Notes: generated from the sequence alone by a model not told the origin. A stretch of 56,225 bases of DNA from Neoconidiobolus thromboides FSU 785 (GCA_025603075.1 MU626393.1:1-56225); one strand, 5' to 3'; counted from the first letter of the stretch, positions 31,725 to 34,648 are shown. Numbers and translations are program-made.

Positions 31725-33286
31725 TTAATAGCTAGTTTTTTGTTAGTGAATTATAATTAGTTAAATTGAAATAACTTACTTGAGTATTTTTATTATTTTT
31801 ATTTAGTAAATCTTCAATCGTTTCTTTTTCTGTTGTTAAATTACTATTACAAATTAATTTTAACAAGTTAATTAATATCCTAAATATTATTATTATTATT
31901 TTAATAATGATAATAATATTTAATCCTACTTATGATATTTGAAATTTAACATCAAATAATTATTATTATCATTTTCCAAATGATTCCCAGTAATTATAGA
32001 TTCATTGCAATTATTAAAAAATAATTCCACTAATTTAGATTGATTTTGTAATAATAGATCTAAATTAGATACAATTTGAAATATCTGATTTTTAAGTTTA
32101 TCTATGAAAACAATAAAAAATGAGCTATTAATTCTAATAAAACTATACAGAATATCCCATCATCACTTACCTTTTGCTTCTATAGAAAAATAATCATGAT
32201 TTCTAATCCTCTTTTGTTCTCGTTGAAGTTGCAATTTTAACTATTTATAAATAGAATTACTATTAATGCAATTAACTATAGAACACTTAGAACTTACTTT
32301 ATAAACCTGGACTTCTAAATCATTAATTTGTTTTAATGAATCATCTACCATTATTTTTTCTTGATTTTCTTTTTTATCACATATCTATCAAATAAATTTG
32401 ATTAATTATTACTTACAGCTCTTGATTAATAATAATAATAAAATCCTACCTTAATATCCATTTGTTTTGCTAATTTCAATATACTATCAAGTTGCTGAGA
32501 ACAAGTGTCAAGCTTTATTGTACTATTTGATAAAGTATTCTTATTAATTGCTACACTATTTATTGTACTAGTTTTATCATTTGTGATATTATTTATTATA
32601 CTAGTTATTGAATTACTCTTATTATTTAAACCAACTTTTATTGAACTATTATTCCTACTATTTGTCCCACTACTAGTTGAACTATTTCCGATATTATTAA
32701 CTTGACCTCTTTTTAGTTGGAATCGATTTTCCCTCGCTATACTATTATTGCTAGTAATTGTTTTAATAACGCTTGTTCTATTGATACTGTTTGTACTTAT
32801 TCTATTGGAATGGATATTACTTATTCTATTAGTACTTATACTACTTATTCTGTTAAAGGTACTAATATTAGTTCCATTGTTGTTCTCATTAAAACTAACA
32901 GTCTTAGCACTATTAATTTTACTAATATCACCAATTTCATTTTTATTACCATTATCATACTTTTTATTGTTGATTTTATTAATTTTATTAATCTTATTAT
33001 CATCATTATCATTACACTTATCTCCATTTCTATTTCCCTTATCGTTTATTTTCTCTACATTACTAACAATGTTACTCTTTCCTCCTAATAATTTCAATTT
33101 CTCTTCTAATGCATTATTACTCTTTGTAATCCTTTCTAACCTTAATCTCTTAAATCGTTCAATCCTTTCTTTAGCACTTAATTTAGTTGTTGAATCTAAT
33201 ATTTTTGGTACTGGTTTTTCAGTAGTACCATTAGTATCAAATCGATGGGTCGGAATACCTGGTTTACTATTGTTGGAATTGTTCAT
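31725..33286 (-). CDS. Hypothetical Asn-rich protein with helical/coiled-coil segments
   Basis: Long first exon (ORF 32426..33310; first ATG 33286) followed by four more exons that join in frame over GT-AG introns (ICDKKENQEK...; LKLQLQREQKRIRN...; stop 31725). No family recognised. Confidence 0.6.
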
Positions 33287-33861
33287 ATTGAAAAATAAAA
33301 AAGATGACAAAATGGGAATAACTATTTTTTGAAATTAACTGAATTAAATTTTGATGGTTGAAATTTTGAAATCAATGTTTTCAATACTAATTAAAAAATC
33401 AATACTTAATCCAGCTGCTTTTAAAACTGAGCCTTTTGTACTACTTTGACAAATTCAACTTATCAAACTTTTTAATTGTTCTTTTTGAATTAATCTCAAT
33501 TTTTCTACATTTCATAATTTTAGTGTTAATTCAGATACAACTATAATTCAGTCTTAAATTTGACTGGATTCAAATATGAATTATTTAGGGCTTAAAGATT
33601 GCAAAAGATTAGCATAAACTCGATTTTTTGCAAAATACTTAAAAAAATGGTCATTTTATCCTTTCAACTTAAGCTTTGATTGGCTCTCAATAATTGAAAA
33701 TTTTTCTTTCCCCTACCTAAATGAAAAAAATGATACTGAAAAATTAGAAAATTTATCAATTCTTAATTTTGAAATCCCTTCTCTTTGCTAAATTTCATCC
33801 AAGTAAATATTCATTATTTATATTCCTTCACTTTGGCTTATCTAGTTGACTTTTTTTAAGG

Positions 33862-34542
33862 ATGCAAATTTCGATCCAAACTCTTACCGGAAAGAGTTTT
33901 GCTGTTGAAGCAAACTCAAATGCTACCGTTGCCCAACTTAAAGCTCAAGTTGAAGCTTGTTCTGGAATTCCAAGTGAGCAACAAAGCCTCCTTTTTGCTC
34001 AAAAATCTTTAGATGATGAACTTACCTTAGCTCATTACAATATCTCTACTGAATCCACCCTTCATATGGTTATTGACCTTCTTGGTGGTGGTAAGAAGAG
34101 AAAGAAGAAGAAGTAAGTGAAAAGTTATTGCTTTTTTTTACTTCACGCTTTTTTCTAGGACATCTCACCCCACTTTAATAAGTGTCCTATAATTAAATTA
34201 GTGTCGAAGATTTATTTAAACTAGGTCAAGTGAAAAAAGATACTAATCAAAAATCATTTTATTTTAGTTATACTACCCCAAAGAAAATTAAGCACAAGAA
34301 GAAGAAGGTCAAGCTTCCTGTATTAAAGTTCTATAAAGTTGATGCTGATGGTAAAATTACCCGTCTTCGTCGTGAATGTCCAAACACTGATTGTGGTGCT
34401 GGTAATTATTATTATTAGTTATTTTTTGTAGTTAGATTTAATTTAATTATTAGGTGTCTTCATGGCATGGCACAAGGATCGTCAATATTGTGGTCGTTGT
34501 GGACTCACTTATGTTTTCAACAAAGAAGGAGAACAAGCTTAA
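33862..34542 (+). CDS. RPS31: 40S ribosomal protein eS31/S27a fused to a divergent ubiquitin-like domain
   Basis: ...[14 protein letters not shown]|[17 protein letters not shown]...[14 protein letters not shown]|[19 protein letters not shown]; C4 zinc finger intact; introns 34113-34267 and ~34402-34453. Confidence 0.96.
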
Positions 34543-34648
34543 ATATTAATTATTAAATAAAAAAATCAATATTTATATATCTCTATTTTATGTTTATTTT
34601 ATATAATAATATTAAGTATATTTATATTGTTTTATTTTATATAATAAA

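Follow-up and report, generated by a model that had tools for sequence, protein, structure and literature searches.

The RPS31 gene of Neoconidiobolus thromboides FSU 785 raises a simple question: is the protein encoded ahead of eS31 ubiquitin and, if it is not, what would such a leader do? The gene lies in a stretch of 56,225 nucleotides (GCA_025603075.1, MU626393.1:1-56225; G+C content 26%), which was analyzed as a whole and is called the window here. An initial annotation made from the sequence alone had proposed that eS31 is fused at this locus to a ubiquitin look-alike rather than to ubiquitin itself, and a gapless alignment (37/76 identical) together with a table of positions bears this out. 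The explanation that best fits the whole, and that we consider reasonably likely, is that the leader is a cleavable cis-chaperone and has ceased to contribute to the ubiquitin pool.

Gene structure, transcripts, and the public gene model

RPS31 has three coding exons at window positions 33862-34542 (+), and its product of 157 amino acids consists of a 76-residue ubiquitin-fold leader followed by eS31. This model is the one open reading frame that came from enumerating GT..AG combinations. Its features are listed below.

33792-33802 (+): 3' end of a non-coding first exon (5'UTR), ATTTCATCCAA, joined to 33861 in run X17
33803-33860 (+): 5'UTR intron, 58 nt, GT..AG; contigs of X4 and X17 match from 33861 on and are preceded by upstream-exon letters
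33862-34089 (+): ubiquitin-like leader, 76 codons, ending VIDLLGG; gapless ubiquitin alignment, PF00240, AlphaFold2, Foldseek
34087-34092 (+): predicted processing site between Gly76 and Gly77; junction form as in canonical fungal Ub-eS31
34090-34112 (+): last part of coding exon 1, encoding the eS31 N-terminus GKKRKKK, with two bases of an Asn codon that intron 1 splits
34113-34267 (+): intron 1, 155 nt, GT..AG; junction of 34112 with 34268 in RNA contigs of X2, X4, and X17
34268-34401 (+): coding exon 2, eS31 with the first zinc-ribbon half, C-x4-C; PF01599 profile positions 1-26
34402-34453 (+): intron 2, 52 nt, GT..AG; 52-nt skip in X1, X4, and X17
34454-34542 (+): coding exon 3, eS31 C-terminus, C-x2-C, TAA stop; PF01599 profile positions 27-44
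34543-34575 (+): 3'UTR to the poly(A) site; A runs after 34575 in contigs of X2 and X4

Exon 1 matches the Pfam ubiquitin family (PF00240, 73.8 bits), and exons 2 and 3 match the two halves of Ribosomal_S27 (PF01599). That domain and a four-cysteine zinc ribbon (C-x4-C, C-x2-C) after KKRKKK identify the downstream part as eS31. The leader had been placed at 33862-34092; the start of that interval is right, and the leader proper stops at 34089, the last codon given being Gly77 of eS31. Upstream, the letters of 33792-33802 (ATTTCATCCAA) are followed directly by GTAAAT in the genome, and the 5'UTR intron at 33803-33860 ends one base ahead of the ATG context. About 500 nt upstream of RPS31, and oriented head to head with it, is a long Asn/Ser-rich open reading frame (32426-33310, minus strand), from which a promoter region common to both genes would follow.

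In 24 public runs, a share of 0.2-0.57 of the 31-mers from a 1-kb stretch around RPS31 is present, which is the expectation for mRNA without introns. RNA contigs were examined for four runs (X1, X2, X4, and X17), and a single 525-nt contig of X4 covers the entire RPS31 coding sequence with 0 mismatches and carries an A run at 34575. This copy is clearly transcribed, spliced, and polyadenylated, and the suggestion that it might be silent fails on the exact splicing and the poly(A) of these contigs. Contigs that run through unspliced intron 1 (34084-34296) also exist, at depth 3699 in X1 and 650 in X2; relative to exon words their depth amounts to a few percent, and they could be unspliced pre-mRNA or DNA carry-over.

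The public NCBI protein for this gene (P0157, 179 amino acids, named "ubiquitin/ribosomal protein S27a fusion protein") was found through scaffold alignment, with the eS31 protein P0059 and the three exons. It is identical to our 157-residue model except for a 22-residue insert. The public model uses an acceptor at 34202, which adds the 22 residues from intron 1; no RNA contig supports this acceptor, and three runs give the junction of 34112 with 34268 only. The practical point is that the public gene model at RPS31 is wrong by 22 residues.

The leader compared with ubiquitin

Against human-type ubiquitin (phmmer, polyubiquitin-C) the leader is identical at 37 of 76 positions, with no gaps over residues 1-76. 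Against the fungal/plant type, for which the variant recovered from the fetched eS31 fusions served as reference, 39 of 76 positions agree. All four arginines are gone (R42S, R54L, R72D, R74L), as are four lysines (K6Q, K29Q, K33C, K63T), so that three of the seven remain (K11, K27, and K48). Other changes are I44L and the replacement of F4 by Ser, G47 by Gln, and D58 by His. The tail reads VIDLLGG, with G75 and G76 kept; for comparison, 231 of about 290 fetched eS31-fusion leaders end in VLRLRGG. The count of 37 and every residue that the initial annotation had singled out (R42, R54, R72, R74, the lysines, I44, the diglycine, and the VIDLLGG end) agree with the position table. Overall the leader contains 3 Lys, no Arg, and 8 acidic residues, giving a net charge of -5 (ubiquitin, 0), and the eS31 part carries +17. 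In a tree of leaders, the terminal branch to N. thromboides is by far the longest, at 1.25 changes per site against a median of 0.029 for canonical leaders. By these comparisons, the divergence lies far beyond chance.

Measured against ubiquitin proper, then, the leader lacks near-identity to the canonical 76-residue sequence, has D72, S42, and L74 where Arg72, R42, and R74 are expected, and does not carry the seven chain-forming lysines. What it does have is the beta-grasp fold, as predicted, and a C-terminal Gly-Gly. All 14 ubiquitin core positions are still hydrophobic, 6 of them identical and 8 conservatively replaced; we take these positions in the leader to be I3, I5, F13, V15, A17, V23, L26, V30, L43, L50, L56, I61, L67, and M69. 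In an alignment of 20 leaders, canonical ones as well as divergent, the residues that never change are M1, Q2, L8, G10, K27, Q41, L43, L56, Y59, T66, L73, G75, and G76. These columns look like core and tail, and the fold and the cleavage tail are thus what the leader appears to retain; what it has lost is the surface for activation and chain building.

An AlphaFold2 model of the leader (pLDDT 87.3) is a beta-grasp with the strand-helix order of ubiquitin, and the best PDB matches of this model in Foldseek are ubiquitin chains (TM 0.92-0.95, rmsd about 1 A). Please note that this match is supportive and is not independent evidence, because the input alignment contained ubiquitin sequences. The leader is nonetheless predicted to fold like ubiquitin.

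A close variant of the leader, which would come from a closely related strain or species, was seen in the metatranscriptome run X17 (33919-33966). It differs by two amino-acid replacements, N20G (AAT to GGT) and V23I (GTT to ATT), and by one silent change, GGA to GGG, which is a minority form in X2 too. This makes four base differences in the leader, N20G accounting for two, and one in about 205 bases of eS31. The pattern is compatible with a leader surface that is free to change, with the caution that the counts are tiny.

It is also worthwhile asking whether the genome holds another copy. The main search used P0157 as the query against 5.8 billion protein clusters, and its 22-residue mis-spliced insert slightly distorts the scores. 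The self match scored 399 bits; next, at up to 311 bits, came multi-ubiquitin contigs, and the best single-leader eS31 proteins, all with canonical ubiquitin, scored about 209 bits. Any N. thromboides paralog with canonical ubiquitin on eS31 should score higher than these, and no second N. thromboides eS31 is among the matches listed above 191 bits; there is thus no second copy on record. This same result speaks against the proposal that a second, canonical Ub-eS31 gene might carry the expression, since none of this species is among the matches listed in the 5.8 billion clusters. The RPS31 gene described here therefore appears to be the only one in N. thromboides.

The same leader was found in no other species in the 5.8 billion clusters, and the N. 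thromboides protein falls within the canonical Ub-eS31 cluster at 50% clustering. Its eS31 part is about 84-85% identical to the best other eS31 (Dimargaris) and 84% identical to that of Umbelopsis, whereas its leader is 47-51% identical to those of the nearest named fungi. No protein of 46-147 amino acids in the 5.8-billion-cluster database shares three 5-mers with exon 1 (84 amino acids), a size range that leaves out 157-residue fusions and a threshold that canonical ubiquitin does not reach. There is thus no free copy of the leader, and no eL40 fusion with it, on record. A scan of the JGI metagenomes gave no relative of exon 1, exon 2 has no 100% match among cluster representatives, and tblastn found no other ubiquitin-like locus within the 56-kb window. 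We found no literature linking Conidiobolus with S27a.

Precedents and divergent leaders in other fungi

Divergence of the ubiquitin linked to S27a is an established and recurrent pattern, to which N. thromboides adds a fungal example. According to the passages on this subject in four papers (PMC10457151, PMC6332867, PMC3684764, PMC8122580), a divergent S27a-linked ubiquitin was described as UBL-1 in Caenorhabditis by Jones and Candido (1993), and Catic and Ploegh (2005) reported 12 further species, 9 of them protists of 6 phyla, and explained the divergence by a lack of recombination with the polyubiquitin locus. The same passages name Plasmodium (2023), Cryptosporidium, Toxoplasma, and the cryptophyte Guillardia theta as also having a divergent S27a ubiquitin, and they describe eukaryotes with such leaders as retaining canonical ubiquitin at other loci. 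For the Giardia variant (Catic et al. 2007), passages in three of them (PMC10457151, PMC3684764, PMC8122580) report a kept fold, a leader that is not cleaved, and a proposed role as chaperone only.

The N. thromboides protein shares with this class a strongly diverged N-terminal ubiquitin-fold leader, in frame on eS31/S27a, and in those species ubiquitin is otherwise near-invariant. Leader and eS31 are here fused in frame in one mRNA, contigs spanning both, and the diverged leader sits on a normally conserved eS31. What sets N. thromboides apart is its lineage, Entomophthoromycotina, and a leader sequence of its own. Like Giardia lamblia Ub(S27a), it has a highly divergent eS31 leader with a ubiquitin fold; in Giardia, however, the Gly-Gly junction is altered and the leader stays on the ribosome, whereas the N. 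thromboides junction (GG-GKKRKKK) is intact. With canonical Ubi3/RPS27A it shares the same architecture, the GG-(G/A)KKRKKK junction, and the eS31 zinc ribbon, but its leader differs at 37-39 of 76 positions, including R72, R42, K63, and F4.

The closest functional parallel comes from FUBI-eS30 (FAU) of holozoans, which likewise has a ubiquitin-like, GG-ending leader on a small-subunit ribosomal protein. FUBI is cut off ahead of 40S maturation, and the lysine equivalent to K27 is the only one it retains (PMC8354635), and its cleavage from eS30 needs particular ubiquitin-specific proteases, USP36 and USP16 (PMC10611586). FUBI belongs to an old, conserved family that is 36% identical to ubiquitin and has eS30 as its partner, whereas the N. 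thromboides leader shares 49-51% identity with ubiquitin, looks lineage-specific, and is joined to eS31 (PF01599). In addition, the best 60 sequence matches of the leader among solved structures are all ubiquitin or ubiquitin fusions. As an analogy, FUBI-eS30 is likely the appropriate working model for the N. thromboides leader.

Among fungi, the initial annotation held that RPS31 normally carries near-invariant ubiquitin. This is generally so: leaders of named fungi are mostly canonical, matching ubiquitin at 70-76 of 76 positions, as in Dimargaris, Zancudomyces (Kickxellomycotina), Rhizophagus clarus, five chytrids, Pneumocystis, and several basidiomycetes. Umbelopsis and Paraglomus are exceptions, and their divergent eS31 leaders are new from this analysis. 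The leader of Umbelopsis ramanniana (P0324) agrees with ubiquitin at 40 of 76 positions and ends in NAELLGG. Two related environmental leaders (P0288 and P0317) agree at 38 of 76, and these three Umbelopsis-type leaders match one another at only 45-50 of 76. Those of Paraglomus occultum and P. brasilianum (P0284, P0286) agree with ubiquitin at 51-52 of 76 and end in ALRLLGG. The earlier reading had pointed to FUBI and UBL-1 as parallels and in doing so understated the precedent, for divergent S27a ubiquitin is recurrent and occurs in other early-diverging fungi too.

Several traits recur among these leaders. Those of Umbelopsis and Paraglomus resemble that of N. thromboides in having Leu in place of R74, in keeping the diglycine (tails ELLGG or RLLGG), and in being net acidic. 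More widely, the fetched proteins include at least 14 different non-canonical leaders with Leu74, several of them with Asp or Glu at position 72 (DLLGG and ELLGG, with ELQGG or ELSGG in dinoflagellate-like sequences). The net charge is -2 to -7 in all six divergent leaders compared (ubiquitin, 0), K27 is invariant among the divergent leaders compared, and GG is kept in every fetched divergent leader despite the loss of R72 or R74.

Did these leaders arise once or several times? The N. thromboides leader matches ubiquitin at 39 positions, the Umbelopsis type at 31-33, Paraglomus at 36, and P0308, an environmental eS31 fusion, at 35. Its identity to the Umbelopsis and Paraglomus leaders (31-36/76) is thus below the identity that each of them has to ubiquitin. 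In the maximum-likelihood tree it stands apart from the Umbelopsis and Paraglomus groups and pairs weakly (86/60) with P0308. Under the approximately unbiased (AU) test, a grouping of every divergent leader in one clade was not rejected (p = 0.39), and neither was a clade of N. thromboides with the Umbelopsis type (p = 0.34). Taxonomy and pairwise identities together suggest an independent origin of the N. thromboides leader. The earlier proposal of an independently derived leader is plausible: it has on its side the greater closeness to ubiquitin (39/76) than to divergent fungal leaders (31-36/76) and the separate place in the tree, while a single clade stands unrejected by the AU test.

Some environmental sequences deserve separate mention. 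P0308 (L001:27-497, Logan DRR256869) has a leader that agrees with ubiquitin at 50 of 76 positions and ends in SLIGG. It has in common with the N. thromboides leader the non-ubiquitin residues A14, A17, A21, E31, E39, E53, L54, and M69. In the eS31 part it stands no nearer to N. thromboides than other fungi do, and its contig carries a second open reading frame 130 nt downstream. Two further eS31 genes have very divergent leaders: P0122 (L003:368-928), with the tail LELLGG and an eS31 part like that of filamentous ascomycetes, and P0119 (L005:401-955), with the tail LRLLGG. Both genes as called appear to read through introns.

Predicted processing and fate of the leader

By analogy with these systems, we infer that the leader is cleaved, that it acts as a chaperone, that it is not charged by E1, and that canonical ubiquitin genes lie elsewhere. 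The precursor would be translated as leader plus eS31, with the leader still folding as a beta-grasp domain. In yeast, ubiquitin is a cis chaperone of eS31 (PMC8122580), and the N. thromboides leader most likely helps the very basic eS31 (+17) to stay soluble and competent for assembly. A cysteine protease of the deubiquitinase type would then cut behind Gly76 and release the leader, so that eS31 is free of it when it functions in the 40S subunit. This timing matters in known fusions: uncleaved yeast Ubi3 enters 40S subunits and impairs translation initiation (PMC8122580), and in human cells non-cleavable FUBI-eS30 blocks late 40S maturation, the diglycine being needed for cleavage (PMC8354635).

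Which protease could do this is a question of the tail. USP36 has hydrophobic pockets that anchor L71 and L73, and glutamates that contact R72 and R74 (PMC10611586). The leader, with I71 and L73, keeps the side chains that are anchored; D72 and L74 remove two salt bridges between USP and the ubiquitin tail, so that ordinary deubiquitinases may cut poorly and a protease that tolerates D72 and L74 may be required. The same substitutions lend something to the view that the leader is never removed and stays with eS31 in the ribosome as an additional domain, for which Giardia ribosomes offer a natural precedent, a ubiquitin-like leader left uncleaved on eS31 (PMC3684764, PMC8122580). We consider this unlikely. 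The altered Giardia junction has no counterpart in N. thromboides, where GG-GKKRKKK is the same as in processed canonical fungal precursors such as that of Dimargaris; the diglycine, L73, and an aliphatic residue 71 are conserved though the remaining tail has changed; and the translation-initiation defects of uncleaved yeast Ubi3 (PMC8122580) speak against a leader that is tolerated in place. One might also ask whether a canonical Ub-eS31 gene exists alongside, with the present copy redundant and decaying, as the divergence of its leader is extreme for a ubiquitin moiety. This is highly improbable given an intact reading frame, an mRNA that is spliced and polyadenylated in several runs, an eS31 part that is normally conserved (84% to Dimargaris and Umbelopsis), core positions that are all hydrophobic, and the lack of a second N. 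thromboides eS31 among the matches listed above 191 bits.

If the leader is cleaved, as we prefer, its fate turns on activation. The ubiquitin E1 strictly requires Arg72, which fits a pocket near Asp591 and Gln576, and is permissive at positions 71, 73, and 74 (PMC3731359), which agrees with the role in E1 selectivity that the initial annotation had assigned to R72. With Asp at this position, no Arg, and three of seven lysines, the freed 76-residue leader probably stays out of the ubiquitin pool, and charging by UBA1 is not expected, in line with the Arg72 requirement. That it might still function as ubiquitin, charged by UBA1 and possibly through a co-evolved UBA1 of this species, has in its favor the predicted fold, the diglycine, K48, and most of the I44 patch. 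We regard it as very unlikely, since phage selection with the ubiquitin E1 kept Arg72 in every clone (PMC3731359) and an Asp there would face Asp591, since three further arginines (R42, R54, R74) are lost together with four lysines, K63 among them, and since other eukaryotes with divergent S27a leaders, in the passages cited above, keep canonical ubiquitin at other loci. More serious, and still unlikely, is the idea that the leader, once freed, serves as a protein modifier specific to this lineage and is activated not by the canonical UBA1 but by a different E1. It should be said that the retention of K11, K27, K48, GG, and most of the I44 patch (L8, L44, H68, V70) counts against our preferred reading, as it also fits a conjugatable modifier, and FUBI, the closest functional analog, has reported conjugates (PMC10611586). 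Against this, cleavage needs GG anyway, the leader is found in no other species in the 5.8 billion clusters, and the leader of the close variant, with two replacements and one silent change, fits a weak surface constraint, tiny as these numbers are. In its fullest form, a new, lineage-restricted modifier with its own activation route, we hold the idea to be distinctly improbable. Were it true, the conjugates would be invisible to standard ubiquitin proteomics, because a tail without Arg or Lys gives no tryptic Gly-Gly remnant.

Under the cis-chaperone explanation, the constraint that normally holds the ubiquitin sequence would have lapsed for the moiety in this fusion, probably along with gene conversion, and ubiquitin itself would have to be supplied by other loci in the genome, namely Ub-eL40 and polyubiquitin genes. 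Few known proteins are as conserved as ubiquitin, and the eS31 fusion gene is the one place of its repeated escape from that conservation. N. thromboides provides a clean, expressed, and apparently single-copy case in a culturable fungus, to which Umbelopsis and Paraglomus add parallels. The recurrent (D/E/R)-L-L-G-G tail hints that the loss of E1 recognition with cleavability kept may be favored, or at least tolerated. These fungal cases are natural experiments on what a ribosomal leader must keep, namely the core, K27, L73, and GG, and on what it may lose: the arginines that bind E1 and the lysines that build chains.
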